Sequence record: PP496440.1
Reading direction: 5' to 3' (one strand)
DNA: 64,000 nucleotides
The position numbers and the translations under genes were made by a program. The notes under the pieces were generated by a model. It worked only from the letters and a program-made list of their open reading frames with translations. It did no database searches and was not told where the DNA came from. This document shows, one piece after another, positions 11,728 to 59,479 of this stretch. Every line of letters begins with the position of its first letter. Position 1 is the first letter of the stretch.

Positions 11728-12046
11728 TACCGCCTCCGGATACTGACTCGATGGCAATTATCTCGGCACCTATGAGCAGGCTCTTCAGCCATTCCTCACC
11801 ACGCTCGTCTCCGTCTTCTACCCGAGTGTCTCCCATCATAATGAATGGGCAGTCGTTGTGCACCTCGAGCCGGTCGTAGACTATACCCACGGCAGAATCG
11901 ATGACATCCCAGCCAGTACAATTGCCGCCGATCTTCACTTCCATGACAGCGCGGAGCAACCCACATGCGAAGGTAAGCTGTACGGTCTGGAGGCAATTGC
12001 CCATAGTGTAGAACTTACCCATCTGTTCGTGATCATAGTTCAACAT
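11708..12046 (-). CDS. Hypothetical protein
   Basis: Start MLNYDH at 12046 overlaps the upstream stop; GAGGA RBS. Confidence 0.7.
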   Translation of the reverse strand: MLNYDHEQMGKFYTMGNCLQTVQLTFACGLLRAVMEVKIGGNCTGWDVIDSAVGIVYDRLEVHNDCPFIMMGDTRVEDGDERGEEWLKSLLIGAEIIAIESVSGGGNVNQGS

Positions 12047-12870
12047 TAGTCTGTCCTCTTGATGTTGCCGGGTAGGGTGTAGGACCACGGCTTGACGTAA
12101 TCTGCCGGGCGGGTGTAGCCTATCAGGTCGGTACCTTCGTACGGGCCGTGCTTCCACGGATCGGTAATCTCTGCGCGTTCAAACCCGATGGACTCGTACA
12201 GCTTGATCGCACCTTCGTTGTCCGGATCCACGTTGAGATGGTGTGGCAGTCCTTGGGTCAGTTCCCAAGACAGCAGGAAGTCCAGCATGCCGCTGGCGAC
12301 ACCGCGACGGCGGTAGTCTGGATCAACACTGATCTCCTTGACGAAGCACGCATCCACCTTCTCGCTGTCCTCGTCTTCCTTGAACATCACAACGTCCATC
12401 AGTCCGACGACCTTGTTGTGCGCGGTAACTGATACCCGTATCTCTTCCTGATCCGGTATATCACCGCTCCAGCCATTCCATCTGGCCATGGTCACGGTGT
12501 ACAGATTGTGTTGCCCGTCGTGCTTGGGACTGTGCACCTGATGCAGTGCCCGTGCATTCTTCAACTCCATCTTGTCGCCGGGCTTGATGACCGGGAATTC
12601 CAGATGCTTGATTTCCTTTTCAAGCATGATACCAATCTCGGAGTCTTTCGCTTTCTTGTCTTTGATGGTGGCTCGGTACACTGTGTCTGTGTCCGTGTTG
12701 TAAACATCCACCTTATCCGTCATCACCGTAATAGACGGCACAGCGGACCAGATGTACTCTTTGCAATGAGCTTTATCCGGGAATGCGAAGCCAACGGACT
12801 CGCCGTCTACAATGACCAGCCACGGGCAATGGCCGGGATGCGGAAACCGAAGGATCTTTTGTGTGGGCAT
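12046..12870 (-). CDS. GNAT (RimI-like) acetyltransferase with an N-terminal extension
   Basis: ISVDPDYRRRGVAS (acetyl-CoA R/QxxGxG/A motif) and LNVDPDNEGAIKLYESIGF. Confidence 0.85.
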   Translation of the reverse strand: MPTQKILRFPHPGHCPWLVIVDGESVGFAFPDKAHCKEYIWSAVPSITVMTDKVDVYNTDTDTVYRATIKDKKAKDSEIGIMLEKEIKHLEFPVIKPGDKMELKNARALHQVHSPKHDGQHNLYTVTMARWNGWSGDIPDQEEIRVSVTAHNKVVGLMDVVMFKEDEDSEKVDACFVKEISVDPDYRRRGVASGMLDFLLSWELTQGLPHHLNVDPDNEGAIKLYESIGFERAEITDPWKHGPYEGTDLIGYTRPADYVKPWSYTLPGNIKRTD

Positions 12871-18589: not shown

Positions 18590-20068
18590 ATGAAATCTGT
18601 AGCCGTTGACTACCAAAAGATAGCCAAGGAATGCCAGTGCACCGAGCTGCCTTCCAAGGTAAGAGTTACTCGTGCACGGGTCTATCCAAACTTGAGGACG
18701 TGCCTACTCTTCCTCAAGTACGATGCCAAAGGTGAACTGGTACAAGCCGAGATCACTGCGCCGTACGACACGTCCACTGAGCCAAAGGTGAGGGTGCTCA
18801 AACATCCTGACAAGAAGTCAGACTTCCTTTCATTATATAGGGCGCTGATCCGCCACCAGATCATACCCGAGTCTATTCCGAAGAAAGGTAACGGGATTGC
18901 ACCAACGCTGGAGGTCATCGGCACACTGGTTAGCCTGCTGCCGGAACGGGATGTCGAAACCTTCCGAACCCTTACCCCGGCCATCCAGACTGGCAGCGTT
19001 ATGTACGTCCCTCTGGTTACGTCCCGGCCAATGCCCATGGTGCAACACTGGATACCTGTTGACCAGCATTCAGAGCTGGGCATGATCGAGCTGGTCGATA
19101 CGGATAGCAAGCCTTTCCTGAATCAGTGGGTCAACAGGTTGAGCAACACCGCCACCGGTTATGTGATCTACACCCCGGAAGGCTCACACGGTCAGGAACT
19201 CGCCTGCTTCCGGGTGCCCAATGTACAAGGGGAGGAACTGTGTGTGGTCAAGAAGGTTGACTTCACCCTGACTGTTGCTCGCACACTCAAGCCGGTACTG
19301 ACTGTATCCACCAAGAGTACTCGGGCAGTGTCCCGCATTCCCCTACCCCACTATCTGATGCTGCGCAATCACCACATCAAGGTGGGCACGGTTATTTCCC
19401 TGCGTCGTAACGACCGAGGTGGGTTGGTGTACCATGAGACGGTGGCCGAGGAAGGCATGACGCCCCTGCCGCTGTGTCCACACTGCCACAGTGGTTCTGT
19501 GCTGCGAGGTAGTAGCAATGACGTGTACTGCAATAACGATTCATGCCGAGGCCTAGCCATCGTGCGACTTCGTTATGTCTTGAACAACAAGCTGGACGTC
19601 AAGTACCTGAGCGACAATAAGGTAACGGCGCTGATCAATGACAAGCAGGACCTGTTCAGCTTGCTTAAGACACCGACGCACCAGTTACGGCATAGACCTG
19701 GCTTTGGTGCACGTACCGTGGACGCACTGGAGGAGAAGCTTAACACTATTGCCGGTCTTCCACTGCACACACTGGCCGAGATGTCCTGCGCTTTCTACAA
19801 CGTGGGCGTGCCCCCACTGGATGAGATGGTGTTCAAGAAGATCTTTTCCGTTATGTCGATTGACTACCTGAAAGCGCTGCCGTCTACCGGCAAGATGTAC
19901 AGTCAGCTGCTCGACATCGAAGGTATCCGCAACAACCGCGCAGTGGCTTTCCTTGCTGGCTGGCCTGCATTTCAACAGTGGATGATAGACCTGAACGCTG
20001 CCCTACAGTCTCGCAGCGCAATCTCCACCACGGTAAATAGCCCAAAACAAATTCGAGGTGTTAAATGA
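18590..20068 (+). CDS. NAD+-dependent DNA ligase-like protein with degenerate catalytic motifs
   Basis: LigA architecture: NTase-like region, OB fold (IKVGTVISLRR), Zn finger CPHC...YCNNDSC, HhH (RPGFGART). The KxDG motif is replaced by NLRT, and there is no BRCT domain. Confidence 0.75.
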   Translation: MKSVAVDYQKIAKECQCTELPSKVRVTRARVYPNLRTCLLFLKYDAKGELVQAEITAPYDTSTEPKVRVLKHPDKKSDFLSLYRALIRHQIIPESIPKKGNGIAPTLEVIGTLVSLLPERDVETFRTLTPAIQTGSVMYVPLVTSRPMPMVQHWIPVDQHSELGMIELVDTDSKPFLNQWVNRLSNTATGYVIYTPEGSHGQELACFRVPNVQGEELCVVKKVDFTLTVARTLKPVLTVSTKSTRAVSRIPLPHYLMLRNHHIKVGTVISLRRNDRGGLVYHETVAEEGMTPLPLCPHCHSGSVLRGSSNDVYCNNDSCRGLAIVRLRYVLNNKLDVKYLSDNKVTALINDKQDLFSLLKTPTHQLRHRPGFGARTVDALEEKLNTIAGLPLHTLAEMSCAFYNVGVPPLDEMVFKKIFSVMSIDYLKALPSTGKMYSQLLDIEGIRNNRAVAFLAGWPAFQQWMIDLNAALQSRSAISTTVNSPKQIRGVK

Positions 20069-20829
20069 ACGTTCAAAACAGAACTCGTATCGCTGTGCTT
20101 GTCGGCGGCGGTCTGGACTCCCACGCCTACATGGTGTTGAAAGCCGACCAGCCACAGACGGACTTCATTCATGTGGACTACGGCCAGCGGGTTGCAGTAG
20201 CCGAGAGAAACGCCGTGTTGCAAATGGCTGAGAAGCTGGGCATTGCCCGCAGTCGCGTGTACACGCTGATCTGCAACAAGAAGAATCACATGCGCAAGGT
20301 CAATGACGGTGTGGGTGTGTTGTTTGGCACCGGCCCGGTCGAGATGGACAATGCGTTTGTTAAGGGGCGTAACCTGTTCCTGATTCAGAAGGCCATCGAG
20401 CTGGGCTACGGTCACGTGCACTTGACGCTGACCCAAGAGCGTGGCCGGATGTTCCCCGATGCCGATCTGGCATTCGTCCAGCTGGTTGACAACCTGATGC
20501 ACCGCAGTTATGACGTGAGGGTATCCGCCCCCTACATCATGGAAGACAAGCATCGGGTGATGTTCAAGGCGTATCGGCATTGCCCCGAGTTCCTCGATAT
20601 GTCTTTCACGTGCTGGGTAGGTCCTTATGTGGAATGTGGCACGTGCCCGCACTGCGTCAAGAAGGAAAAGATTCGAGCCGAGATGATCGTTGAGAAAGCC
20701 GACTACGATCTCAACAAGGATGAACGTGAGGCGCAGTGGAAGCAAGTCAAGGCAGGCTACGGCGACGCGTTGAAGCCCGCTGAGACCATCAACGCGACGG
20801 TATCTGTTGCTAAGGGGGAATTTAAATGA
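20065..20829 (+). CDS. queC: QueC-like PP-loop ATPase (paralogue 1)
   Basis: VLVGGGLDS, VDYGQR, FVKGRN, FPDAD and TCW...CGTCPHC Zn motif. Confidence 0.8.
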   Translation: MNVQNRTRIAVLVGGGLDSHAYMVLKADQPQTDFIHVDYGQRVAVAERNAVLQMAEKLGIARSRVYTLICNKKNHMRKVNDGVGVLFGTGPVEMDNAFVKGRNLFLIQKAIELGYGHVHLTLTQERGRMFPDADLAFVQLVDNLMHRSYDVRVSAPYIMEDKHRVMFKAYRHCPEFLDMSFTCWVGPYVECGTCPHCVKKEKIRAEMIVEKADYDLNKDEREAQWKQVKAGYGDALKPAETINATVSVAKGEFK

Positions 20830-21548
20830 ACAAGTTCTTAGGTTGGTTCAAGCGTCTGCTGGATAAGAAACAAAAGTCAGTCACGATGACGTTGACCGAC
20901 GCCGAAGGTAAGTTGGTCACCATTCACATACCGCAAGGTGCGGGTGTCGAATACACGCTCTCGAAGTCGGGCACCCACTTGAACATCTCAGTTAAAGACG
21001 ACGTGTTCATGTTGCGCACGAATGGCGCAGGAGGCAACGGAGGTGGCGGTGGCCGTGGAAGTTCCAAACCCGGTCTCAACGGTGGCCCCGGCCATACACC
21101 TATCCCCCGGTCCCCAAGCTTCACGGGCGCTGGTACGCCGAACTACGGTCACGCAGGCGACCCGCCTGTTGGTGCTCAAGCTTCGTTCCCTATCGGCGCC
21201 CGAGCAACTGTTTCTGGTGGTGGGCGCGTTGGTGGCCTGTCAGGTGGAAGCGCAAACGGCACAATGGCTGGTGGTGGAGATGGCTTAGTTCCCTCTCCAA
21301 TCCGTAGCTCTGATCGAGCTTACCTGATTAGAGGTTTGTATTACGTCATCACGACGAAGAAGATAACGGGAGAGCAATACCCGATCCATGAGCTTCTGCA
21401 TTGGGGTAAGAAGTCAATCGAACTCATGGGCAAGTTCTCCACCGTCCGAGACGCTATCGACGAACTCAAATTGAAGACGGGTATCCCATTCGAAGACCTG
21501 ACGGACTATCAGGTTGATTCCCTTCCCAAACGACTGTGCAAGCCTTGA
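20826..21548 (+). CDS. Glycine-rich protein
   Basis: 240 aa with a central G/P/S low-complexity tract; located between the two QueC paralogues. Confidence 0.7.
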   Translation: MNKFLGWFKRLLDKKQKSVTMTLTDAEGKLVTIHIPQGAGVEYTLSKSGTHLNISVKDDVFMLRTNGAGGNGGGGGRGSSKPGLNGGPGHTPIPRSPSFTGAGTPNYGHAGDPPVGAQASFPIGARATVSGGGRVGGLSGGSANGTMAGGGDGLVPSPIRSSDRAYLIRGLYYVITTKKITGEQYPIHELLHWGKKSIELMGKFSTVRDAIDELKLKTGIPFEDLTDYQVDSLPKRLCKP

Positions 21549-21550
21549 TC

Positions 21551-21559
21551 GGGTAAATG
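21551..21559 (+). promoter_or_regulatory. GTAAAT-type promoter motif
   Basis: GGGTAAATG about 28 nt upstream of QueC-like paralogue 2. Confidence 0.55.
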
Positions 21560-21586
21560 GCCCGTAACTAATCCGGAGACACCAGC

Positions 21587-22405
21587 ATGACCACTGCGCC
21601 CCCAAAGATTATCGTTGCATTCAGCGCCGGTACAGATTCAACTACAGCGGCCTACTACTATCGCAAGCTCGGCTATCAGGTAACGCTGGCCGTGTTCGAT
21701 GACGGCGCATGCAACGATCCACTTGGCCCTCTGTACGATCCGAACAAGCCGAAGGACTTGACCAACTTCTCGGATGAGTTCTACGATTACGTACGGATTC
21801 ACCAAGAGCACACGGAAGGCCATCTTCAGTTCGACTTCGTGGAGATTCGTTATCCGCAACTCGCATTGCTGGAAGCCAACAAGACAGCCAAGCCCGGTCG
21901 GGACAATGCAGCAGCAGCAGAGGCTGACGGCTTGGGCTTCTGGGTCGGCTTCAAGGGCCTGATGGCAATGTTGCTGATGAGCCACGGCGCCGCCAATGGT
22001 TACGAGGCAGTAGTCTTCGGCCACATGCCGTACAACAACCATTACGAAGATGAGCTGCCCCAGAACTTCGAGCTGCTGCGTCAGTACATGGTTACGGCCT
22101 ATGGCAGCCGAGTGGAAATTCCTCAGATCTACCACCCATTCTATCGACCGAATTTCGATACCAAGGAAAAGGTTATTGAGCTGGCGCAGGCAATCGGCGT
22201 GCCCTTGCGAGATACCTATTCGTGCCGCCGAGGTGAAGTAGAAACCCGAGGTATCCTCCTGCCACTTCTGCGTGGCGGTAACTCCAACTACGTGAGCCCC
22301 ACCTACCGTTGGAAGCATTGTGGTACGTGTGAGAACTGTGTCGAACGCAAGCGAGCCTTCGCGGCGCTGGGCATGAAAGATCCTGCCCCTTATATGGAAC
22401 ATTGA
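21587..22405 (+). CDS. queC: QueC-like PP-loop ATPase (paralogue 2)
   Basis: VAFSAGTDS, TKEKVIELA..IGVPLRDTYSC, HCGTCENCVERKRAF. Confidence 0.8.
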   Translation: MTTAPPKIIVAFSAGTDSTTAAYYYRKLGYQVTLAVFDDGACNDPLGPLYDPNKPKDLTNFSDEFYDYVRIHQEHTEGHLQFDFVEIRYPQLALLEANKTAKPGRDNAAAAEADGLGFWVGFKGLMAMLLMSHGAANGYEAVVFGHMPYNNHYEDELPQNFELLRQYMVTAYGSRVEIPQIYHPFYRPNFDTKEKVIELAQAIGVPLRDTYSCRRGEVETRGILLPLLRGGNSNYVSPTYRWKHCGTCENCVERKRAFAALGMKDPAPYMEH

Positions 22406-22406
22406 T

Positions 22407-23423
22407 ATGGCCCTTTCAATCTGGCCGCTGACCGAAGGTGAACTCGGTCAGGGCCTCGTCAACGAACTGAATCGTACCAGCAAGGCGCTGGTGAACCGGA
22501 GTATGTGGTCTTTGCCATTGCTCCGGCGTTTGTTTTATCGGCGCACCGAGATTGGTGTCCCGGAGCTACTCCACGTCTGTACCAGCATTCATCGGGGCAA
22601 GACTTACTTCTGCCTGTTGGTGAACTTCCGAGATGTGGTGATGGGCAACCCCGAGCAATACGGATGGGACCTAGCTGGCCGGTGGTTGTTCTACGATGTG
22701 GATCTGCTGGATACCCCGGAGTTTAAACAGGTAAACGCGGCTATTCGTAAGGTGGCTACGGTCAACACGGTTACCTACGGTCAAGCATTCGTTCCGGATG
22801 AAGGTGGTATGGGGGAGGAGCACTGGATCAAGAAACTGAAAGGTAACTACCGCCCCCACATCTTCGGCGAAAAGTCAAAACAGGTTATCGTCAGTCAGAC
22901 CTGCGGACACGCGGCTACTCACGTTCTGACCGAGGCAGTGATGTCATTCGGTATCCAGCGCGCTGAGAGATTTCTCGCGGAAGGTCAGTCGGATGTCATG
23001 CCGGAGTTGTATGACCTACCCATGCAGCTAGCCGGTCTAGGCTCGATCCCTGGAACCCGGATTGGCACCGTGTCGCTCACCTGCCGGGATACCCGTGCGC
23101 TGATCGGTACCCTGTCGTTCTACGTTGTGGCAGGCTTGGGTCACAGTGATATCTTGTATATGCACGAGATGCTGATTGATCCGGATCCGAAGTGGAAGCC
23201 TCTATCGGTGGCCGTCAACTTGCACATTCAGGCAATCATGTATGTGCGCTATCTAAACAGCCGATCTGATCGGGCTTCGGACTTGGTTATCAACCTCGGA
23301 TTCAACTTGGACGAGAAGTACAACACATACAAAGAGGTGTTCCGTCCGAACAAGTCCGAAATGGAAATCTATACCGGCATGCACACCGAGCCCGGCGTCC
23401 CACTGTCCTGTTTCAAGGGGTAA
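22407..23423 (+). CDS. FemAB/GNAT-like transferase (paralogue 1)
   Basis: WIKKLKGNYR helix and C-terminal INLG...YKEVF, the pattern of FemAB/Acetyltransf_6-like proteins. Confidence 0.45.
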   Translation: MALSIWPLTEGELGQGLVNELNRTSKALVNRSMWSLPLLRRLFYRRTEIGVPELLHVCTSIHRGKTYFCLLVNFRDVVMGNPEQYGWDLAGRWLFYDVDLLDTPEFKQVNAAIRKVATVNTVTYGQAFVPDEGGMGEEHWIKKLKGNYRPHIFGEKSKQVIVSQTCGHAATHVLTEAVMSFGIQRAERFLAEGQSDVMPELYDLPMQLAGLGSIPGTRIGTVSLTCRDTRALIGTLSFYVVAGLGHSDILYMHEMLIDPDPKWKPLSVAVNLHIQAIMYVRYLNSRSDRASDLVINLGFNLDEKYNTYKEVFRPNKSEMEIYTGMHTEPGVPLSCFKG

Positions 23424-23426
23424 GAC

Positions 23427-24428
23427 ATGTACACTCCGTATTCCCAAAACAGTCTGATGCAATCGATCCCGTTGGATGACCAAGGTACATTCGCCCATCC
23501 GCCGTATACGATGGAAGGAGAGTTAACCGACGTGTGGACGAATCCAAACCTATATGGGTTCGTCAGCCTGTTGAACGGCCAGAGCAATAGCCGGGCCTAT
23601 CGAGACTGGATGACCACCCACAATCTTCCAGCCCTGTTCCTCGGTCCGCACCATGAAGACAACTTCTGGTTTGAATTCAGCACTGGTCTTGTCCCCAACT
23701 GCACGCTGGACTACAACGAGATCAACGTCCAAGGCAACCTGCAGGACTTCCTTGGGAGATTGACGTCATCTCGCCGTCGCTCCGTGCTCAAGGCAAAAGA
23801 AACGGATACGACGATCCACAAGGCAGGCTCGGTAGCCAACTTCAACCTGTATCATCCGGTAGAGGGTAGGCTGTATAGTCTGACCGTGATTCACGAACGC
23901 CGGGTGATGAAAGACATTTCAGAGTTTATCGAATCTAAACTCTGGAGTATGAAGCATACGCCTACTGACCTCACGTACGGTGCATTCACCACCCTGATGG
24001 ATTACATCCGGTTGAAGCAGCGAGATGACACGCCGCTGGGCCACCGGTTGCGCAACGTACAGCTCTTGGTTATCCGAGATGAACGCTCCGGGTTTATCGT
24101 GTCGGTACACCTGGTGGCGATCAACACGTTGAAAGATGATTCCATGAACCCCACCAAGACGTACATGCACTCCTTTGCGCGCATCACTGTTCTCCCTGCA
24201 CGTATCGCCTTACTTGCGTTGATCAAGTCGGTTCAAGAGTTAAACGTCACCAGTCAGTATGCGTCCCGTGCACTGGCGAAGATTGACTATCTTGACGTGA
24301 GCAACGTGGTGCTGTCCGAGCGAGAGCAGTACAAGTCGGACTTCTTCACCGGCAAATGCCAAGTGCGTGCGTGGGCATCCCCGGCGCTGCTGGAACGACA
24401 GTTACCTTTCGTTACGCCGATCCCGTAA
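23427..24428 (+). CDS. FemAB/GNAT-like transferase (paralogue 2)
   Basis: FLGRLTSSRRRSVLKA and YLDVS...QYKSDF. Confidence 0.5.
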   Translation: MYTPYSQNSLMQSIPLDDQGTFAHPPYTMEGELTDVWTNPNLYGFVSLLNGQSNSRAYRDWMTTHNLPALFLGPHHEDNFWFEFSTGLVPNCTLDYNEINVQGNLQDFLGRLTSSRRRSVLKAKETDTTIHKAGSVANFNLYHPVEGRLYSLTVIHERRVMKDISEFIESKLWSMKHTPTDLTYGAFTTLMDYIRLKQRDDTPLGHRLRNVQLLVIRDERSGFIVSVHLVAINTLKDDSMNPTKTYMHSFARITVLPARIALLALIKSVQELNVTSQYASRALAKIDYLDVSNVVLSEREQYKSDFFTGKCQVRAWASPALLERQLPFVTPIP

Positions 24429-24430
24429 CT

Positions 24431-24439
24431 CTGTAAATG
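24431..24439 (+). promoter_or_regulatory. GTAAAT-type promoter motif
   Basis: CTGTAAATG in the intergenic gap upstream of 24483. Confidence 0.5.
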
Positions 24440-24482
24440 ATGGGAACAGCCCCACCATCACTTCATCTCTAGGGTAGTTCCC

Positions 24483-25535
24483 ATGCAAGACTTCGATAAG
24501 ATAATGATCGATAGTAGTTTGACATCCAATCTGGTGTACGCAGGGTTGGGTAACTTGATCACGCCCCGCGCACTTGACCTGCTGATCGAACATCAGGCTG
24601 CACTGGAAAACGTATACGCCAATCTGGAAACGGCCTATCAGATTACCCCACCCTTCCCTTGTGAAGCTGCATTCAATTCCCCTGACAAAGATCCTGTGCT
24701 GGTCGCCGACTATCTGAATGCTACTCCCGCCATCCGTTGCGGAGAGCTGGCTGGATTCGAGGCAAAGCCCGGCAGTTACTACCACGCCCCCGCTGCTGGC
24801 ATTTGCCCGGAACATCGCATCGATGTACGAGGTATGTCTTTGCGTGAGTTCGACCACTATCTGGTTGAGCGTAAGGAGGTGTCACGGATCACTACCAATC
24901 TGGTGGCCGACAAGTTCCGCTGTGAGACGCATGTGTACAAAGTGGATGAAGATCATATCCTGATCCATGACGCCGAACGAGTTGGGATCAGCCAGACGGA
25001 CTTCCGCCGCATGTGGGCGCAGACCCGCCGCCGGGAAATCGCTGAAAACTATCTGCAGTACATGCCCATCGAAGATTCCGCCAAGGATGATCAGGTGGTG
25101 CGACTGATCAACGAAGACGTAGCACGGGTGTTCGCCCAGAACGTCGACTACGACCGCATGATTCCGCCCGAGCTGATCTTCGATGGTCAGGGCAAGCCGG
25201 TGCTGACCGTGCTGAAAGATTGCAACGCCAAGGTATTGGGCATTGGTGTGTACGTCATCTACAAGTCAGCTGACCCAGAGCATGACAGCGAACTGCACTG
25301 GCGTGGCGCTTTCTACGATCACGAAGATCCTCGCGTAGCATCCATGGGCATTGAACACGCTCTGGTTGCCAGCGCACTGCACACAGCGTACGCCTGCAAC
25401 GCGGTCCTCTATCTGACCAAGGCACCTAAGTCCGTGTGCGACGCATGGAAGACGGAAGTGCACCAAGGTTACGGTCTGGTCCGTAATGCGATGCCGGAAC
25501 TGTCTGACACCCCTTACATTCTGGCTATCCAGTAA
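24483..25535 (+). CDS. GNAT-like transferase resembling ATE/Fem aminoacyl-transferases (paralogue 3)
   Basis: C-terminal AFYDHEDPRVASMG...VLYLTKAP...AWK resembles the ATE_C/Fem FYDP..SLG...YLG...YK pattern. Confidence 0.4.
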   Translation: MQDFDKIMIDSSLTSNLVYAGLGNLITPRALDLLIEHQAALENVYANLETAYQITPPFPCEAAFNSPDKDPVLVADYLNATPAIRCGELAGFEAKPGSYYHAPAAGICPEHRIDVRGMSLREFDHYLVERKEVSRITTNLVADKFRCETHVYKVDEDHILIHDAERVGISQTDFRRMWAQTRRREIAENYLQYMPIEDSAKDDQVVRLINEDVARVFAQNVDYDRMIPPELIFDGQGKPVLTVLKDCNAKVLGIGVYVIYKSADPEHDSELHWRGAFYDHEDPRVASMGIEHALVASALHTAYACNAVLYLTKAPKSVCDAWKTEVHQGYGLVRNAMPELSDTPYILAIQ

Positions 25536-25540
25536 ATAGC
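25531..25540 (+). promoter_or_regulatory. GTAAAT-type promoter motif
   Basis: AGTAAATAGC overlapping the upstream stop codon, about 29 nt before the ATP-grasp gene. Confidence 0.45.
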
Positions 25541-25568
25541 CGGTAACTCCATCCATTGAGGTACTTCC

Positions 25569-27653
25569 ATGAAATCCGTGAACCCCATCTTCAAGCACGT
25601 TCCCCAGTTCGACTGGCCTGTCATCCCGCGTGCACAGTGGGAAGAGATCATCAAAGGCAAAGAGCATGTGATGTTCGACTCCTTCTCGCAGCTCGCTCAG
25701 GTGCTGGCTATCCCGGTGAGCAGTTACCAGTTCTACTTCGAAGATGGGTCCACGTTGTTCGCCGGTCCCGAAGCAACCTTCACCGCCGCGCCGTACCCGC
25801 TGTATCAGGACCTTGAATTCGTCCTGACCCCTGACGAGACGTTGGTGCCGGGTCTTGCACTGGATACCAAACCGTGGGGCCTGTACACCGACGAATGGGT
25901 GGACAACTACGAAGGTGCGGACAAGGAAGACATCGGCAACAAGACCGGGTTCGAATTCATTCCGCTGTCGGACGCCTTGAAACTGGTGGTCCTCAACACG
26001 GAGACCATGCAGCTCCAGTACACTGCAATCGAGAGCTTCACGTACGACGGCGTGACTTACGTATACCTGCTGGCTGATGGCGTGTGCTGGGTACTGGCGG
26101 GCAAGTCAGGTGGTCTGGTTGCCAGCGAGCATGACAAAGGTGCGGCGTTCATCATGGTGTCCCATCCCGAGTTCGCCGGGTGCAGCGTAGACAACATGTA
26201 TCCAAGTGAGTTCGGTGAAGCGGAAGCGACGTTCTACGTTCAAGACGAGGAACACAACTACCTGGACGCGGCTAACCGCATCTTCGAAGAAGCCAAGGAC
26301 GTAGGCGCGGGCACATTCCTGACCATTGAGACCGGGGATGGACTGCCGACCGCGCTGGCGTACAACCTGCGGTACAGTGATGTGGCCCACGTTAACCTGC
26401 CGATGCACAACATCCACCAGTTCACTTCTCTGCACGTACGACTGGGTGAGACTCCTAACTTTTCCGAGGCCCCGGAAGCGTGCCGCATGAAAGAGGTTAT
26501 GGAGTATCTGGCGGACCCTGAGTCCCCGGTAGATCATTACTGGTCGGCCATCATGGTACTGGAGAAGAACTTCCCCGGTTTCGCCGACGCCCTGAAAGAC
26601 TCCAGTGTCCCGACCCGTGACATCGTGCACTCCAAACAGGCGTTCAGCTTGGAGATCGATCGCCAGTTCGGCAAGGAAGTGGCAAGCAAGATCGGGCTGA
26701 ACACTGGCGTATTCGCTCAAGTGAAAGACCGTGATGAATGGCTGGTACGCAAACACGAGTTCCCTACCGATAAGGTGGCCGTCAAGTACAACACCAAACA
26801 CTTCATCGGAATCTTCGATAAGGACGAGGTATCGAATTCCATCAACATGTGGCTGGCCGGTCAACCCGGAGAGTCGCTGATGATCGAAGAGTACTTCGGT
26901 GAGGGCAATCAGGAATTCAACCTGTGCTATGTGATCAACGAAGAGTTCGTGCAGCCGACGCTGTTCCTGTGCGAAGTCAACAAGATCCTAGGTAATGACA
27001 CCGGCGGCAAAGGTGGCAACACGCTGGCCTGCCATGATGCTCGTATTAACAAGTACCCTGAGTTCTTCGAGCCGGTCAATGCTGCGCTTGCTAACCTGCA
27101 TGAGCACGTGGAAGGTGTGAAGGGCTGGGTTGACCTGAGCTTCATGGTCCGCGACGGAATCCCTTACTTCACAGAGTGGTGCATTCGAATTGGCTGCTCC
27201 AACAACGCCACCATCGTGCGCCAGATGGAGACCCCGCTCGACGTTCTGCTGACCAACGTGGTTAACAAGGTGCATACCGAGCTGTCTTGGAAGCACTCCA
27301 TGTCTGTCAGCGTGGACATCTACAGCATGCCGCTGTCCGCAGGCAATGATGCCAACATGCAGTTCACCGAGTCGCTGACCACGCCGGTCGAGATGGTGTC
27401 CCCGCTCAATCTGGAACTGGCGGCGGAGAGTTTCTTCGACCCGATTGATTCGGCCTGGAACGCGGTGTACGACGGCTACATTGTCGAGGCGTACAACCGA
27501 TATGGCACCGTCTCGGGGTATTCCACCAACTGGAACTTCGCCTGCAATGCGGCGTACAATCACTTGAAAGATCAGTCGGTGTTGTACGGGGCATACCGCG
27601 AAGCGCCTGCCCACCACGACCCACTGACTCTGTTCCCTTTCCTCAAGGCGTAA
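25569..27653 (+). CDS. PurD/GARS-like ATP-grasp amide ligase with an N-terminal extension
   Basis: LEIDRQFGKEV, VAVKY, MIEEYF.E..EF, NDTGGKGGNT and DLSFMVRDGIPYFTEWCIRIG parallel the PurD ATP-grasp motifs. Confidence 0.75.
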   Translation: MKSVNPIFKHVPQFDWPVIPRAQWEEIIKGKEHVMFDSFSQLAQVLAIPVSSYQFYFEDGSTLFAGPEATFTAAPYPLYQDLEFVLTPDETLVPGLALDTKPWGLYTDEWVDNYEGADKEDIGNKTGFEFIPLSDALKLVVLNTETMQLQYTAIESFTYDGVTYVYLLADGVCWVLAGKSGGLVASEHDKGAAFIMVSHPEFAGCSVDNMYPSEFGEAEATFYVQDEEHNYLDAANRIFEEAKDVGAGTFLTIETGDGLPTALAYNLRYSDVAHVNLPMHNIHQFTSLHVRLGETPNFSEAPEACRMKEVMEYLADPESPVDHYWSAIMVLEKNFPGFADALKDSSVPTRDIVHSKQAFSLEIDRQFGKEVASKIGLNTGVFAQVKDRDEWLVRKHEFPTDKVAVKYNTKHFIGIFDKDEVSNSINMWLAGQPGESLMIEEYFGEGNQEFNLCYVINEEFVQPTLFLCEVNKILGNDTGGKGGNTLACHDARINKYPEFFEPVNAALANLHEHVEGVKGWVDLSFMVRDGIPYFTEWCIRIGCSNNATIVRQMETPLDVLLTNVVNKVHTELSWKHSMSVSVDIYSMPLSAGNDANMQFTESLTTPVEMVSPLNLELAAESFFDPIDSAWNAVYDGYIVEAYNRYGTVSGYSTNWNFACNAAYNHLKDQSVLYGAYREAPAHHDPLTLFPFLKA

Positions 27654-27656
27654 TCC

Positions 27657-28820
27657 ATGAGCACTCCATTCCAAGAGTTCACCCTAGAAGGGTGGATTCG
27701 CTACATGAGAGATGAAAGCATCATCTGGCGCGCGTACGCTGATGGTCATCCGGATAAGGTCGAGTTCAGCCCGGAGTGGCGTGACGAGATGTATCGGTTG
27801 ATGGTGCAGTTCAAAGATCTGCTGCCGATGTCGTTTTCCAATCCGGTGTACGGCTTCACTGAAGGTTGGCTGGAAGGGCTCGGACTCCAGCCCTTTTATG
27901 GCGATGATCCGTTCAATCCGATGGTGCAACCGCTTAGCCACCCTCTGGTGCATGTGGGGCTTCCGTTTACTCTGAGCGAGCTGACGGCGGGCGTATGGGA
28001 CTGTCAGTCCCTGAGCGCTCACCTGGAGCGTCCGCTGCTGGTCGATACATTCGAACCGATCCCAGTGCCATCTATTAGCCTGGACGCTTACAAAGCCGTC
28101 CTGACCGTACGGGACCGGGAAGAGATCGTGATGAGTGCGGGAACCCCGGTGAACTACTTCCTCTGGTTGAATAGTCCGATCACCGAACTCAAAGACGACT
28201 TCGACGTTTATCTGGCCAGCCTGACCAAGAAGCGCCGCTACAAAGTGAAGCAGGCACTGGCGACAGTGGGCACCGAAGAGAACCCGGCTATCAGCGTCAG
28301 TACTGGATCTCGTTTCGGCGAAGGGTTGTTGTCCGATCAGGTGAACAGCATCCTCGCGACTTTCGAAGATCCGGTGGACATCGAGTGCATGCTTCTTCAG
28401 CTGCTGTTCGGGGTGGCAACCTGCAATACCCATCCGCATCTTGTCGATCTGGTTTGTGCAGACCATCAGTTGGGGATCTTCATCAGGCGCAACGGCCACA
28501 CGATGAATTTCCTCTACAACCGTGACCCGGACAACCGCGCTGACTCAGGCATCAACCTGCTGACCCAGTACGTGCGCCATCTGCACATGAACCGCCCGGA
28601 AGGTGTGATGTACGTGGACCCGACATGTCGATATCGGCCTGACGAGGACAGTATGAACACCTACAAGCGGGTGATCACCAACGAGAACCGGTATCACCCA
28701 ATGCCGTTCGTCTCGGCTGACCCTGCGCATATCGAAGGTGTGATTACCCCGGCGTTCATTGCAGGTCATTGGCAGATGTCGGCGTCCAATGGCCCGGCCA
28801 ATCCTGAGATGATGGAGTAA
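27657..28820 (+). CDS. FemAB/GNAT-like transferase (paralogue 4)
   Basis: FDVYLASLTKKRRYKVKQAL, a hallmark Acetyltransf_6/FemAB helix, and YVDP...TYKRV. Confidence 0.65.
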   Translation: MSTPFQEFTLEGWIRYMRDESIIWRAYADGHPDKVEFSPEWRDEMYRLMVQFKDLLPMSFSNPVYGFTEGWLEGLGLQPFYGDDPFNPMVQPLSHPLVHVGLPFTLSELTAGVWDCQSLSAHLERPLLVDTFEPIPVPSISLDAYKAVLTVRDREEIVMSAGTPVNYFLWLNSPITELKDDFDVYLASLTKKRRYKVKQALATVGTEENPAISVSTGSRFGEGLLSDQVNSILATFEDPVDIECMLLQLLFGVATCNTHPHLVDLVCADHQLGIFIRRNGHTMNFLYNRDPDNRADSGINLLTQYVRHLHMNRPEGVMYVDPTCRYRPDEDSMNTYKRVITNENRYHPMPFVSADPAHIEGVITPAFIAGHWQMSASNGPANPEMME

Positions 28821-28822
28821 CC

Positions 28823-29770
28823 ATGGCAAAGCACAAGGTCAAAAGGTTGGAAATCAACCACATCTACGACTTCTACCCGTTGTATCAGGTGATGTACGGG
28901 CGTGGCATGGAGACCAAAGCGTTCGAGGTCTCCAAGTTCGCCAAGATGGTGCTGGACTTCGAAGCATCAACCAGTACTCGCCGGAAGTGGGACGTGCTGG
29001 AACCTTTCAGCGGTATCAGCGAGCATGAACACTTCTTCGCTGCTACTGGCCTGAACATCGAGCACTACACCGGCATGGACATCGTGGTTCCAGATGGGGC
29101 CAAAAACGTCATTCAAGGTGACATCATCACCGACACCCTTCCGTTTCACGTCAACGCGGTGTTCGCCTTCTACTACAGCTTGCAGAATGTACGGGACGCC
29201 AAGACTGGCATGCACACGCGGGAAAAGCTGGTGGAGTTCTTCGACAACATCCTCGGCCATCTGCAAGTCAATGCGAACAAGAGCCGTATGCCCGCAGTGT
29301 TCGCTTTCCACCTTGACCAGCCTGAAGACCCTAATTACTATCTGACGTCCCGTGCCGACGTTGGAGGTGAACAGTCATGGACCGCACCCGCGTGTGGTCT
29401 GCTGGGGCAGTGGGTCAAGTGCAAGCCTACTGATACTCTGGAAGTGAAGTGCAATCTGGACACCTGGTACAACCGTGTGCAGTGCACCGCGTACGATCAG
29501 GCGGAGGATATCCAGATTCTGGTAAATGGGCGAGTAGTGGCTACCGTTGAGATCGAACAGCCGTTCACCCATCGGGTCTGGACCGAGCATGAGGTGATCG
29601 ATATCCTGCGGGGTCTGGACTACAATCTGCACTTCCACATGTACAACGGCACCATCTCCAATTACGACTTCTTGATGACCCGTTTGGAAGACAAGCCCGT
29701 TCCCGGCGATGAAGAGGCTAATACTAATCAGATGACAACTGATATGCTGGTTGTCGTTAATCCGAGGTAA
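28823..29770 (+). CDS. Class I SAM-dependent methyltransferase-like protein (paralogue 1)
   Basis: VLEPFSG, YTGMDI, IQGDI and VNAVFAFYYSL. Confidence 0.65.
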   Translation: MAKHKVKRLEINHIYDFYPLYQVMYGRGMETKAFEVSKFAKMVLDFEASTSTRRKWDVLEPFSGISEHEHFFAATGLNIEHYTGMDIVVPDGAKNVIQGDIITDTLPFHVNAVFAFYYSLQNVRDAKTGMHTREKLVEFFDNILGHLQVNANKSRMPAVFAFHLDQPEDPNYYLTSRADVGGEQSWTAPACGLLGQWVKCKPTDTLEVKCNLDTWYNRVQCTAYDQAEDIQILVNGRVVATVEIEQPFTHRVWTEHEVIDILRGLDYNLHFHMYNGTISNYDFLMTRLEDKPVPGDEEANTNQMTTDMLVVVNPR

Positions 29771-29772
29771 GA

Positions 29773-30690
29773 ATGGCTAAGCCCAAGATCCCTACACGAA
29801 CCATCCCCACGTTGTACCAAGACTGGGGATTGTACAGCGCCATCTGCGAACTGCCGCAGGAGACGATGCTGATGATGTCGCGCTTCGTGGCAGACCGGAC
29901 TATAGAGCATGCTAATAGGCATGACATAGATCGTGTGTCGATCATGGAACCTTTCAGTGGTCCTATCCCGTATTACGAACCTGATATCGACAGTTTCCTT
30001 ACTAGAGCTGGCATAGGTTTAGACACGTATGATCATGTGGAATACCTAGATCACGGTGAGCTGACCAAAAAGAACAATATCATCATCGGGGACATCACCA
30101 CCATAGATCTTAAGCAAAAGTACGATGTCATCTACGGTAGTTACGGTAGCTTGGCCTGCCTGTTGCTGGATCAGACGCATAACAAAGCGTACGAGAAATC
30201 TCACGCGGCGTTGGTCAACATTCGCGAGCACCTGAAACCCGGCGGCATCTTCGTGCTAAACGCCAATGGGTCAAGCGAGAGTCTGCTGAATAACCTGTTG
30301 AACTCTGATGAGCCGGATCAAGAGATTCGCGTCCGTCCGGGATCGCAGTTAGGTAAGGCGTTCCGAATCAAACCAGACAGTAACGCGCTGCTTCGCTTCA
30401 CCTATCATGTGGAGTACGACCGGCGCACCACCTGCACCATGTGCCACTACAGCGATATGGTGCTGTCTGTAAATGGAGTTGACATCCAGCGCTGGGAGGT
30501 GGAATCCCCGACGTATCTTGCGCCGCTGGATGAACCCGAACTAATTCGAATGGCAGGTATGGCTGGTTTCAATCTGGACAACACTGAGTTCTACGGATTG
30601 GACACCACCGGTTATCCTGCCTTCTTCAAAATGGATACGGTCTGCGACGGGTCATGGTCACCCGCCGAGTTCGTAGTCTTTCGCACCTAA
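29773..30690 (+). CDS. Class I SAM-dependent methyltransferase-like protein (paralogue 2)
   Basis: IMEPFSG, IIGDITTIDLKQKYDVI and HLKPGGIFVL. Confidence 0.8.
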   Translation: MAKPKIPTRTIPTLYQDWGLYSAICELPQETMLMMSRFVADRTIEHANRHDIDRVSIMEPFSGPIPYYEPDIDSFLTRAGIGLDTYDHVEYLDHGELTKKNNIIIGDITTIDLKQKYDVIYGSYGSLACLLLDQTHNKAYEKSHAALVNIREHLKPGGIFVLNANGSSESLLNNLLNSDEPDQEIRVRPGSQLGKAFRIKPDSNALLRFTYHVEYDRRTTCTMCHYSDMVLSVNGVDIQRWEVESPTYLAPLDEPELIRMAGMAGFNLDNTEFYGLDTTGYPAFFKMDTVCDGSWSPAEFVVFRT

Positions 30691-30700
30691 CGAGGTTCCT

Positions 30701-31906
30701 ATGAGCGTTATCATCCCCACCGTAGCGATGGAGAGTGGTCAGCCAGACATGATCATTCCGGGTTGTGCGACACCTACCCCGGTCAAGTCTTCCAAGAAGC
30801 TGTACGAACGTGAAGACTTGATGGCGTACGACAGCGAGTCGGAGCATTGGCAGAAGCAGCTGGCCCGCCGCTACGCTCACCATGGTGAGATGGTCGGTGT
30901 GTTGAACAACGTCGAGGTGGTGCCGGAAGCCACCTATCAGAACTTCGACATGAAGATCACCCCGTACACCGCGCAGTTGATGGACCAGAACGACCCCAAC
31001 TGCCCGATCCGTCTGCAGTACATGCCGACCAACAAAGAGCTGGAGTCGATTCAGCGTGAAGAGACCATGCACAACGAGCTGGGCGAGGAAGAGGACACCA
31101 TCCCCGGTACCTCGGTCGTGCACCGCTACCCGCGTCGCGTCTTGTTCCTGACCACTACCCAATGCGCCAGCTTCTGCCGTTACTGCACCCGTGCACGCAT
31201 CGTCTCCCACGGCGGCGAAGCGGCGATCACCAAGAAGCACCTTGACGCCAGCATCGACTACATCGCTGGGAACAAGGACATCGAAGACGTGCTGCTGTCC
31301 GGCGGTGACCCGTTCATCCTGCCAGACAACAAGCTCGACGAGATTCTCGGTCGTATCCGCGCCGAGGCACCTCACGTTCGCTTCCTGCGTATCGGTAGCC
31401 GACTGCCGGTACAGATGCCGACCCGTATCACTCCAGAGCTGTGCGAGATTCTGGAACGCCACAACGTCAACATGGTCAACATCCATGTGAACCATCCGAA
31501 AGAAGTGACCCCTCTGCTGGCCTCCCGGATGAAGATGTTGCGCAAAGCGGGAGTCATGCTGGGCAATCAGGCGGTCCTGCTGAAAGGCGTGAACGACTCC
31601 ATCGAGGTGATGACCGAGCTGTGCTTGCGCATGGTCGAGATGGGTGTGCGTCCGTACTACGTCTACTCCAACGATCCGGTGGCCCAGGCCGCACACTTCA
31701 CCGTGTCGCTGAAAGAGATGCTGAATATCAACGAGGGTATGCGTGGCTTCCTGTCTGGCCCGGCTATGCCAACCTTCGTGGTAGACGGCGTGGGTGGCTT
31801 GGGCAAGATGCCGGTGCAGAAAGAGTACGTCGGCTTCGATAAGAACGGCGGTATCTTCGCCCAGAACTTCGAAGGGAAAACGGCCCGCATGCCCCATCTG
31901 GAATAA
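30701..31906 (+). CDS. kamA: Lysine 2,3-aminomutase family radical SAM/PLP enzyme (KamA/EpmB)
   Basis: HRYP.RVL, CASFCRYCTR (CxxxCxxC), LSGGDP, RIGSR.P..P.RIT, NQ.VLLKGVND, PYY, and GGLGK (PLP lysine). Confidence 0.95.
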   Translation: MSVIIPTVAMESGQPDMIIPGCATPTPVKSSKKLYEREDLMAYDSESEHWQKQLARRYAHHGEMVGVLNNVEVVPEATYQNFDMKITPYTAQLMDQNDPNCPIRLQYMPTNKELESIQREETMHNELGEEEDTIPGTSVVHRYPRRVLFLTTTQCASFCRYCTRARIVSHGGEAAITKKHLDASIDYIAGNKDIEDVLLSGGDPFILPDNKLDEILGRIRAEAPHVRFLRIGSRLPVQMPTRITPELCEILERHNVNMVNIHVNHPKEVTPLLASRMKMLRKAGVMLGNQAVLLKGVNDSIEVMTELCLRMVEMGVRPYYVYSNDPVAQAAHFTVSLKEMLNINEGMRGFLSGPAMPTFVVDGVGGLGKMPVQKEYVGFDKNGGIFAQNFEGKTARMPHLE

Positions 31907-31969
31907 GCGTTCCCAGACACTCCCTAGTTCCATTGTACAAGCTTCAAATGCCCCATTTGCGCTAGGTCC

Positions 31970-55789: not shown

Positions 55790-56761
55790 ATGAAAGATAT
55801 GCGCTATACCGAACTGTTCTATTCCCTCCAAGGTGAGGGGTTGCGCGTTGGGGTGCCTTCGGTATTCTTCCGCATGTTCGGTTGCAACTTCGAGTGCAAG
55901 GGATTCTCCAATCCTGAAATGAAAGATCCCAACGTGATCCCGGCCATCAATCTGCTGGCGATCAACGACGCCGATCTGGAACTGGGCTGTGACTCTCGTT
56001 ACAGCTGGCACAAGGACTATCGCAACCTGGCCATCAAAGCTGCTCCCCATGAGGTGGCCAACACTTTGATCGACTTCACGAAAGAGAAGCACTTGGCGGC
56101 GGTGGCTCGCTGGCCCAAGCGCAATCGAGCAGGTAATGTCGTCCGCTTGATCCCCGGACTTCCTATAGATGGAGTCCTTCAGATTGCTACGCTGGCGCAC
56201 ATACCAGACTGGGTGTTCACCGGCGGCGAACCGTTCATGCAGCAAGAGCAGCTGGAAGGTCTGCTGCGTCACGCCATGTACGTTGTGGAAGAGGAGGACG
56301 TTAACTTTGGCCTGCTTGGCCTGCCGATGCTGACTTTCGAGACCAACGCCAGTATTTCGATGAGAGACTCCATGCTGGATTGTCTCAAAGATTACAACGA
56401 TGGCTTCGGCGACGTGCACTTCTCTAACAGCCCCAAGCTGTCATTCACGGGAGAGCATCGCAACGCGGCTCTGAAGCCCTACGTTATCGAGCAACAATGC
56501 TCTATCGGGGGCTCCAGTTCGTTCAAATTCGTGGTGCGCCCTGCTCGCGAAGACTTCGATGAGCTGATGGAGTTCATGCAAGAGTATCAACCCTACATGG
56601 ATGAAGGTAGTATCGAGAACATATACGTCATGCCGGTCGGCGCCAGCTTGCACCAGCAACAAGCCATCGCCACGCAGGTTGCGGAGCTGGCACTGGAATA
56701 CGGACTGTCCTACAGCCCACGGCTCCAGTGTGACCTGTGGGCCAACAAGATAGGGACGTAA
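55790..56761 (+). CDS. queE: 7-carboxy-7-deazaguanine synthase (radical SAM)
   Basis: ELFYSLQGEG...PSVFFRMFGCNFEC...CDS, VFTGGEPF, FETN, SPKL, FKFVV, and PRLQ. Confidence 0.9.
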   Translation: MKDMRYTELFYSLQGEGLRVGVPSVFFRMFGCNFECKGFSNPEMKDPNVIPAINLLAINDADLELGCDSRYSWHKDYRNLAIKAAPHEVANTLIDFTKEKHLAAVARWPKRNRAGNVVRLIPGLPIDGVLQIATLAHIPDWVFTGGEPFMQQEQLEGLLRHAMYVVEEEDVNFGLLGLPMLTFETNASISMRDSMLDCLKDYNDGFGDVHFSNSPKLSFTGEHRNAALKPYVIEQQCSIGGSSSFKFVVRPAREDFDELMEFMQEYQPYMDEGSIENIYVMPVGASLHQQQAIATQVAELALEYGLSYSPRLQCDLWANKIGT

Positions 56762-56763
56762 CC

Positions 56764-58720: not shown

Positions 58721-58729
58721 GGGCCTACC

Positions 58730-59470: not shown

Positions 59471-59479
59471 GGTGACATC

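Follow-up and report, generated by a model that had tools for sequence, protein, structure and literature searches.

A phage operon that combines a Fem-type tandem GNAT protein with QueC-like, ATP-grasp and aminomutase family enzymes suggests a route to nucleobase hypermodification

Hypermodified bases are a main means by which phage DNA counters restriction and CRISPR, and they are a source of new nucleic acid chemistry. In phage Mu, the GNAT protein Mom uses Gly-tRNA-Gly to generate N6-carbamoylmethyladenine in DNA (PMC13219725), and in the CmoX/CmoY system the asparagine synthetase homolog CmoY serves as an ATP-dependent amide ligase, joining glycine to a carboxyl group on cytosine in DNA (PMC12783734). 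Phage 7-deazaguanine pathways draw on FolE, QueD, QueE, QueC, Gat-QueC, ArcS2, DpdA, and DpdL/M/N, and every pathway described in the corresponding report ends in DNA (10.1101/2023.04.13.536721). Here, we describe a 12-gene operon on the plus strand (18590-31906) of a 64,000-nucleotide stretch, below called the window, which is identical to positions 137089-201088, the final 64 kb, of Pseudomonas phage vB_PpuM-KoPa-5 (PP496440.1). The operon encodes at least one, probably two, and possibly four Fem-like transferases next to two QueC-like enzymes, an ATP-grasp ligase, two methyltransferase-like proteins, and a KamA-family aminomutase. We give an even chance to the reading that it constitutes a nucleobase hypermodification pathway, which would place an amino acid or short peptide side chain on 7-deazaguanine, most likely in DNA. 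The kinds of enzyme involved are known individually; their combination appears to be new as far as the literature searched shows.

KoPa-5 is a 201-kb jumbo myovirus whose host is P. putida KT2440/PaW85, like the phages a laboratory strain, and its record annotates every gene of the operon as "hypothetical protein." Within the operon, no gap between neighboring genes exceeds 54 nt, and some genes overlap. Its surroundings are replication genes, with a UvrD-type helicase gene on the opposite strand to one side and topoisomerase II genes to the other, and the region is common to eight further phages of the same genus cluster at 87-100% DNA identity. Sites resembling promoter or terminator consensus sequences are no commoner in this stretch than in shuffled sequence. 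An earlier sequence-only reading of the span 22407-28820 had singled out four proteins, here called A, B, C, and E, as paralogous FemAB/ATE-like GNATs. All four are present as complete plus-strand open reading frames (ORFs), and each motif string on which that reading relied is literally there in the translations: WIKKLKGNYR (aa 140-149), NLG (296-298), and YK (308-309) in A; LTSSRRR (aa 112-118), YLD (288-290), and YK (302-303) in B; FYD (aa 277-279), SMG (287-289), LYL (309-311), and WK (322-323) in C; and LASLTKKRR (aa 186-194), VDP (320-322), and YK (336-337) in E. They are real genes, because they are conserved in nine related phages and their ratios of nonsynonymous to synonymous substitution (dN/dS) relative to phage Peetri, 0.10 for A, 0.11 for B, 0.14 for C, and 0.26 for E, indicate purifying selection. 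The span also holds a fifth gene, D, which encodes a PurD-like ATP-grasp protein rather than a GNAT and had gone unmentioned.

Direct sequence comparison leaves the four proteins without relatives among known families. None of them matches a family in Pfam, PHROGs, or NCBIfam, and comparison with PDB sequences gives only chance-level matches. Nor do they match one another in BLASTP, where no pair scores better than an E value of about 2; in an all-versus-all comparison of the operon proteins, the methyltransferase-like F and G are the sole related pair.

For protein E (27657-28820, +; 387 aa), profile searches and structure prediction reach considerably further. Although E itself has no Pfam match at an E value of 0.01 or better and a word-indexed search recovered only 5 relatives, a 5-sequence profile searched against 1.84 billion representative proteins gathered 84, 60 of them at an E value of 1e-10 or better. 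Six of the 72 relatives scanned match PF13480 (Acetyltransf_6; best E value, 3.8e-8), and two match PF04339 (FemAB_like). The AlphaFold2 model of E, built from a 72-sequence alignment, is confident, with a predicted local distance difference test score (pLDDT) of 87.9 and a predicted template modeling score (pTM) of 0.88. In a Foldseek search of the PDB, its best matches are the aminoacyl-tRNA-dependent peptide synthases Sbb17/Sba18 (E values of 4e-7 to 2e-6, probability 1.0), followed by alanyl- and lysyl-phosphatidylglycerol synthases (A-PGS and L-PGS), the C-domain of MprF, the DUF2156 protein 2hqy, and FemX (6snr, E value of 5.5e-5). The alignments to Sbb17, A-PGS, MprF, and FemX have a probability of 1.0 and cover 309-381 columns, that is, the whole chain. 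The TM-scores are modest (0.38-0.49), which is to be expected when identity to the solved members is 8-14%. Further down the list are PamZ, the clavulanate tandem GNAT 2wpw, VipF, and ordinary GNATs. Because some of its relatives match Pfam, its model is confident, and its structural matches run the length of the chain, E is, as judged from the predicted structure, a divergent member of the Fem-type tandem-GNAT superfamily.

The conservation pattern within the E family points to the two regions that carry the motifs. Near-invariant positions are P174, L189, and R194 at the basic helix; K337, R338, and N342 at the YK motif; and P365, with K337, R338, and R194 conserved in at least 90% of the family. 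We take the catalytic or binding lysine of FemX to be that of its own C-terminal aromatic-Lys motif, F304-K305. E shares with FemX/FemABX and MurM (FemAB, Acetyltransf_6, FemAB_like) the tandem GNAT architecture, and it also has a basic helix and a C-terminal aromatic-Lys motif. FemX and MurM, however, serve cell-wall synthesis, whereas the setting here is a phage nucleobase context and the four proteins fall below all Pfam thresholds; a role in the cell wall, like that of FemX proper, was considered and rejected as a misfit with the genomic context. MprF-type proteins (the MprF C-domain, A-PGS, and L-PGS; DUF2156) have the same tandem-GNAT fold and account for many of the top 25 Foldseek matches of E, but E has no membrane domain, lipid context, or sequence-level match to them. 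The closest structural matches, Sbb17/Sba18 (PDB: 9wqw, 9wqx, and 9wqy), act on streptothrisamine and are 12-14% identical to E. Beta-lysine from a KamA-type aminomutase is also a building block of the streptothricin family, which parallels the product predicted for the aminomutase of this operon. The difference is that Sbb17 and Sba18 are actinomycete natural-product enzymes working on an amino sugar, while the presumed acceptor here is a deazapurine derivative.

Protein A (22407-23423, +; 338 aa) is very probably Fem-like as well. A word-indexed search finds its orthologs in the clade and one further relative at 57% identity. Comparison of the A-family and E-family profiles with hhalign gives a probability of 66-67% and an E value of 5e-5, colinear over 156-279 columns, and pairs HWIKKLKGNYR of A with YLASLTKKRRYK of E and YNTYKEVF of A with MNTYKRVI of E. 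The family motifs reside in the C-terminal domain of A, which starts at about aa 135. An AlphaFold2 model built from a six-row alignment is of low confidence (pLDDT 52); its better part, aa 160-295, nevertheless runs strand-helix-helix-three strands-helix-strand, the order of a GNAT domain. The top 50 Foldseek matches of this model are all GNATs, with full-length alignments to the tandem GNAT 2wpw and to FemX (1ne9).

The gene for A begins 1 nt after that for u4 (21587-22405, +; 272 aa), the second of two QueC-like PP-loop enzymes in the operon (PF06508, 47 bits versus a cut-off of 22). Two distant relatives of A, both in contigs that also carry E-like genes, bear on this arrangement. One is a truncated ORF upstream of a D homolog in contig L005. 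The other, in a metagenomic contig (L015:2-1480; Logan SRR13837215), is a 492-aa ORF in which a QueC domain (N-terminal 190 aa) is fused to an A-like C-terminal part of 290 aa; its QueC domain is of the u4 type (PF06508, E value of 9e-14), and downstream lie D-, F-, and E-like genes and then the start of a KamA homolog. Because the two are fused there, the A-type domain appears to be functionally tied to a u4-type QueC-like enzyme.

The picture is less clear for B (23427-24428, +; 333 aa) and C (24483-25535, +; 350 aa). Outside the nine-phage clade, no homologs of either were found by a word-indexed search for B or by scans of JGI metagenomes with C and B, which came back empty; the lone exception is a B-like gene of which contig L016 preserves, at its end, the first 43 aa. 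Against the E family, hhalign gives B a P value of 0.0013, confined to 26-28 residues at the basic-helix motif. When the 159 non-overlapping ORFs of the phage are scored with the E-family hidden Markov model (HMM), B ranks first among the 158 that are not E (P = 0.0017), and of 2000 shuffled versions of B only 10 score as high. A 264-aa protein in contig L018, itself a second E-like paralog (hhalign against E, 78%, E value of 1.8e-5), aligns colinearly with B (P = 0.012). Taken from sequence comparison, these values hint that B is a Fem-like GNAT. C gives a P value of 0.24 against the E family, where the unrelated controls u1 and u3 give 0.16-0.18; its values against the E, A, and merged profiles lie between 0.16 and 0.30, and 639 of 2000 shuffles reach its score in the E-family HMM. 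Merging the A and E profiles added no link to B or C, and among the neighbor proteins of other clusters none serves as a bridge to A, B, or C except the 264-aa protein of L018, which matches E and, weakly, B. By eye, C does appear to repeat the element order of the E model: EFDHYLVERKEVSR is followed by helices, three strands, a helix starting at SMGIEHAL, the strand VLYL, and then AWK.

These observations raise the possibility that only E and probably A are Fem-like, and that B, C, or both are unrelated clade-specific proteins in which the motifs are chance look-alikes. C scores no better than the controls, the signal in B is a single motif of 26-28 residues, and neither has full-length homologs beyond the clade. 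The motifs themselves are permissive: a loose two-motif pattern, defined post hoc, fits 7 of the 123 phage ORFs of at least 200 aa, among them B, C, and E but also four unrelated ones, so that the motifs are enriched in the A/B/C/E genes yet not diagnostic alone. On the other side stand the first rank of B among the 158 ORFs, the layout of C as read by eye (acidic-aromatic helix, basic helix, three strands, helix, strand, aromatic-Lys, as in the E model), and the presence in other clusters of two or three Fem-like paralogs in the same place, between QueC-like and ATP-grasp genes. On balance, we regard the chance-resemblance explanation as somewhat unlikely.

Overall, the sequence-only reading is partly borne out. 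The four proteins were taken for paralogs; profile homology joins A and E (hhalign E value of 5e-5), the tie of B is weak (P = 0.0017), and C shows no similarity (P = 0.24). Of the proposed Fem/GNAT fold, E is confirmed by AlphaFold2 and Foldseek and A is probable, B is suggestive by sequence, and C is left without sequence-level support. The structural check proposed at the time returned a confident tandem GNAT for E and, for A, a low-confidence model with GNAT-only matches. The suggested membership in the ATE and L/F-transferase families finds no support: none of A, B, C, and E matches ATE_N, ATE_C, or Leu_Phe_trans, in a scan that was extended to E values up to 10 for A, B, and C. The sole match of this type is a sub-threshold one to ATE_C (E value of 0.007; 17.4 bits versus a cut-off of 25) in a neighboring gene of another contig, L006.

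If these proteins are acyltransferases, their donor could be an aminoacyl-tRNA or an acyl-CoA. The coenzyme A (CoA) pyrophosphate motif, Q/RxxGxG/A, has no match in B, C, or E, and its two matches in A (aa 164 and 207) both lie away from the usual strand-helix junction. The phage does encode an ordinary GNAT acetyltransferase (12046-12870, -; Acetyltransf_1, E value of 1e-13), and this protein has the CoA motif, as RRRGVA. Since the motif is absent from its usual site and the nearest structures of E belong to tRNA-dependent enzymes, we favor aminoacyl-tRNA as the donor by analogy. The GNATs might instead be real but work without aminoacyl-tRNA, taking an acyl-CoA or another activated donor, or they might be non-catalytic, substrate-binding partners of u2, u4, and D, with these ligases making all the amide bonds. 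Such roles would be in keeping with the presence of PamZ, the clavulanate tandem GNAT 2wpw, VipF, and plain acetyltransferases in the Foldseek list of E, with the fusion of QueC and A-like parts in L015, which would suit a substrate-presenting domain, and with bacterial E-like genes that are paired or fused with ordinary Acetyltransf_1 domains. However, when the distinct PDB entries matched by E are ranked by score, the top eight are all aminoacyl-tRNA-dependent enzymes or their DUF2156 relatives, A, B, C, and E all lack a CoA pyrophosphate motif where it would usually stand, and the near-invariant basic residues R194, K337, and R338 of E would suit binding of an RNA acceptor end. We therefore consider a tRNA-independent role unlikely and retain aminoacyl-tRNA as the presumed donor.

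The genes around the Fem-like proteins give this chemistry a possible context. Upstream of u4, u2 (20065-20829, +; 254 aa) encodes the first QueC-like PP-loop ATPase, of the ATP-dependent amidoligase type (PF06508, 68.6 bits versus a cut-off of 22; PHROG 1550, QueC-like). By sequence, both u2 and u4 are QueC family members, which may make preQ0, ADG, or another amide. D (25569-27653, +; 694 aa) is likewise assigned, by its profile matches, as an ATP-grasp ligase of the PurD (glycinamide ribonucleotide synthetase) type: its aa 354-586 match NCBIfam purD at an E value of 7e-7, which falls far short of the equivalog cut-off and hence holds at superfamily level only, and a profile of D orthologs finds four PurD entries in the PDB (E values of 0.003-0.6). 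Ahead of the ATP-grasp domain, D carries an N-terminal extension of ~350 aa. Scans of IMG/VR with alignments of E and D gave no matches.

Downstream of E, the operon continues with F (28823-29770, +; 315 aa), G (29773-30690, +; 305 aa), and H (30701-31906, +; 401 aa). F and G are methyltransferase-like paralogs (BLASTP E value of 4e-8 with G as the query and 3e-4 in reverse). Neither matches Pfam or PDB sequences; G has a weak NCBIfam match to a daptide methyltransferase (E value of 0.0024), and by eye the F/G consensus contains motifs I-IV resembling those of S-adenosylmethionine (SAM) methyltransferases of the Rossmann type (e.g., ILExFSG, MDI, and GDI). H is a KamA-family radical SAM 2,3-aminomutase (TIGR00238, 275 bits versus a cut-off of 199), with the lysine, glutamate, and arginine equivalog models all below their cut-offs and the EpmB model among its NCBIfam matches. 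It aligns with lysine 2,3-aminomutase (2A5H) at an E value of 2e-79, and the two aspartates of the latter that we take to bind the lysine epsilon-ammonium group are both conserved. This alignment suggests that H probably makes beta-lysine.

The operon opens with u1 (18590-20068, +; ~490 aa), a LigA-like protein that matches NCBIfam LigA over aa 309-409 only (E value of 1e-6, far below the cut-off). Its Vibrio phage ortholog (25% identity, E value of 2e-17) matches DNA_ligase_OB, HHH_5, and, weakly, a zinc finger. No adenylation-domain match was found in either protein, while the OB, zinc-finger, and helix-hairpin-helix parts of an NAD-dependent ligase are kept. From these domain matches, u1 is probably a ligase-derived DNA-binding subunit, and it may bind nicks or DNA and bring in the modification enzymes. 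Elsewhere (121096-123075 of the record), the phage encodes a full-length NAD-dependent ligase in addition. Between the two QueC-like genes, u3 (20826-21548, +; 240 aa) encodes a glycine-rich, low-complexity protein for which the family search found no match; its gene varies between 711 and 768 nt across the sister phages and is absent from the Vibrio phage module described below, placing it outside the conserved core. Two long antisense ORFs, at 30626-31933 (-; 435 aa) and 21638-22402 (-; 254 aa), overlap the KamA gene and the u4 gene in full. Both most likely arise from base composition (55% G+C) rather than being genes.

Further genes of deazaguanine type lie in a second plus-strand cluster (55790-60061). 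It consists of a gene for a QueE-like radical SAM enzyme of the 7-carboxy-7-deazaguanine synthase type (55790-56761, +; PHROG 2076, E value of 3e-41), ORFs of 114 and 129 aa, a 408-aa sliding-clamp-like ORF, the gene for GTP cyclohydrolase I, FolE (58730-59470, +; PF01227, E value of 4e-39), and a 193-aa protein of PHROG 17451. Outside the clade, the QueE-like gene is closest to genes of the very Vibrio phages in which a module of E, D, and KamA homologs occurs. The 114- and 129-aa ORFs are possible QueD candidates, with no family match. The 408-aa ORF was considered as a DpdA and rejected, as it matches a sliding-clamp PHROG. Upstream of this cluster and directly upstream of the DNA polymerase gene, 50009-51643 (+) encodes a 544-aa protein with a C-terminal GDSL/SGNH hydrolase domain (PF13472, E value of 4e-12).

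Related modules in other phages and contigs retain much of this gene content. In Vibrio phages vB_VcorM_GR11A and GR7B, a reduced syntenic module runs in the order LigA-like gene, DUF5591 (ArcS2-type) gene, two QueC-like genes, a gene for a 351-aa protein that shares the C-terminal motif of the Fem-like proteins, E homolog, D homolog, and KamA. The DUF5591 protein of GR11A (L002:8224-9186) matches its family at an E value of 3e-7, above the Pfam cut-off, and BLASTP finds no counterpart of it in KoPa-5. Archaeal ArcS transfers lysine to preQ0, and by analogy an ArcS-type protein would be another link between amino acids and deazaguanine. ArcS2 is a known component of 7-deazaguanine pathways (10.1101/2023.04.13.536721).

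Among phage-like metagenomic contigs, L006 and L018 combine a pair of QueC-like genes with E-like and F-like genes, an ATP-grasp gene of the GARS_A type, and one or two additional GNAT-like proteins; L007 has Gat-QueC, an ATP-grasp gene, and an E-like gene; and L005, L015, and L017 carry homologs of D, E, F, G, and KamA. The ATP-grasp genes that adjoin the E-like genes in L006, L007, and L018 are of the shorter, GARS_A type. In L005 and L018 an F-like gene comes after the E-like gene, in L006 it comes after the ATP-grasp gene, and in L015 and L017 it stands before the E-like gene. Given that L018 contains a second E-like paralog, several Fem-like genes per cluster appear to be normal for the module. 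The E-like gene also occurs in bacterial contigs (L019:5358-8571 and L020:5130-7917), where its neighbors are a RimK-like ATP-grasp gene and one for a small Acetyltransf_1 GNAT, a three-gene module that appears to be uncharacterized; in two further E-like proteins (P0061 and P0063), an ordinary GNAT is fused to the N terminus of the E-like domain. As the pair recurs in both bacteria and phages, an E-like transferase and an ATP-grasp ligase would form the invariant core, and in phages this pair is attached to 7-deazaguanine genes.

At the level of family or fold, the assignments of E, D, H, u2, u4, FolE, and QueE are established, and so are the structure of the operon and its conservation. With two QueC-like enzymes, D, KamA, FolE, and a QueE-like enzyme in the context, the product is more likely a side chain on a 7-deazapurine than a free peptide. 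The sequence-only reading had envisaged stepwise assembly of a short peptide from aminoacyl-tRNA, independent of ribosomes and nonribosomal peptide synthetases; this is a good hypothesis that would be better framed as the assembly of a side chain on a modified base. In the pathway we propose, FolE and the QueE-like enzyme, together with a host or other QueD, would generate 7-carboxy-7-deazaguanine or a derivative of it. A carboxyl group would then be adenylated by u2 and u4 to form an amide with ammonia or with the amine of an amino acid, a chemistry (amino acid onto the carboxyl handle of a DNA base) that is the same as that of CmoY, although CmoX/CmoY acts at cytosine C5, involves an asparagine synthetase rather than a QueC family member, and adds one residue. 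H would supply beta-lysine; D, in the manner of PurD, would join the carboxyl of an amino acid to an amine via an acyl phosphate; E and A, and perhaps B and C, would add residues from aminoacyl-tRNA; and F and G would methylate the product. The modified phage DNA would thereby be protected against host nucleases. We infer the donor, the acceptor, the order of the steps, and DNA as the final target.

The fullest version of this proposal is that the phage runs a line, independent of ribosomes and nonribosomal peptide synthetases, that builds a beta-lysine-containing, N-methylated oligopeptide on 7-deazaguanine of its own DNA, using two PP-loop ligases, an ATP-grasp ligase, and up to four tRNA-dependent Fem-like transferases. 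In this complete form we find it distinctly doubtful.

The same set of enzymes could also serve a product that is not DNA. An aminomutase, an ATP-grasp enzyme, a methyltransferase, and a tRNA-dependent transferase make up the set of a streptothricin- or blasticidin-type pathway, which resembles that of the operon, and the top structural match of E acts on a small molecule, streptothrisamine. Beta-lysylation of EF-P uses a KamA homolog, and the EpmB model is among the matches of H. Together with the failure to find DpdA in the phage annotation or the scanned ORFs, these parallels would suit a free peptidyl-deazapurine metabolite resembling a nucleoside antibiotic, or a modification of tRNA or protein, for host takeover. 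Yet the operon sits among replication genes and is headed by a ligase-derived DNA-binding protein. Moreover, the phage 7-deazaguanine pathways in the corresponding report all end in DNA, and some phages with modified DNA have no recognizable DpdA (10.1101/2023.04.13.536721). We therefore regard phage DNA as the likely target and a product other than DNA as very unlikely.

Several observations weigh against a deazaguanine-linked DNA hypermodification pathway. No bona fide QueD was identified. No DpdA/TGT-type transglycosylase is annotated in the 201-kb record or was found among the ~35 window ORFs scanned, most hypothetical proteins outside the window being unscanned, and this gap in the route of deazaguanine into DNA is where the proposal is weakest. 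The window contains no tRNA genes. The model of A is of low confidence (pLDDT 52), a GNAT fold is no more than putative for B and C, and the fold alone leaves the donor unfixed, given that the matches of E include the acetyl-CoA-type PamZ, 2wpw, and VipF. The bacterial E-like modules come without Que genes, so the pair of E and ATP-grasp proteins is not tied to deazaguanine as such. Finally, the paper reporting the isolation of the phage contains neither chemical data on its DNA nor discussion of DNA modification (bioRxiv 10.1101/2024.03.26.586772). The same paper does report that a standard phage DNA kit recovered extremely little DNA from the G3 jumbo phages, so that the columns had to be changed (bioRxiv 10.1101/2024.03.26.586772). 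A bulky or charged DNA modification could cause such yields, but this proves nothing.

The locus shares with the 7-deazaguanine pathways FolE, the QueE-like enzyme, and two QueC-like enzymes, and its relatives add Gat-QueC (L007) and ArcS2/DUF5591 (Vibrio phage); unlike DpdA-dependent systems, it shows no DpdA in the annotation or the ORFs scanned. Mom is its closest functional precedent, in that an amino acid from a charged tRNA is brought onto a DNA base, a likeness that is functional and drawn from the literature: Mom is a single-domain GNAT that works alone and on adenine, whereas here up to four tandem GNATs would work within a multienzyme, deazaguanine-linked operon. We found no literature linking KamA, ATP-grasp, or Fem-like genes with phage deazaguanine genes, and the available part of the text on phage 7-deazaguanine pathways draws no link of KamA, ATP-grasp, or Fem-like GNAT genes to them (10.1101/2023.04.13.536721).

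E and its 84 relatives constitute a previously unannotated family that is tractable for biochemistry; in phages as in bacteria, its members always come with an ATP-grasp ligase. The 7-deazaguanine modifications known so far are small groups (cyano, amido, aminomethyl, methyl, formyl, and carboxy), and in the literature searched Mom is the only case of tRNA-dependent DNA modification. The operon would unite these two themes and add beta-amino acid and ATP-grasp chemistry, pointing to a side chain far larger than any described. If the fullest version of the proposal is true, it would be a first both for peptide decoration of a DNA base and for multistep use of charged tRNA in DNA modification.

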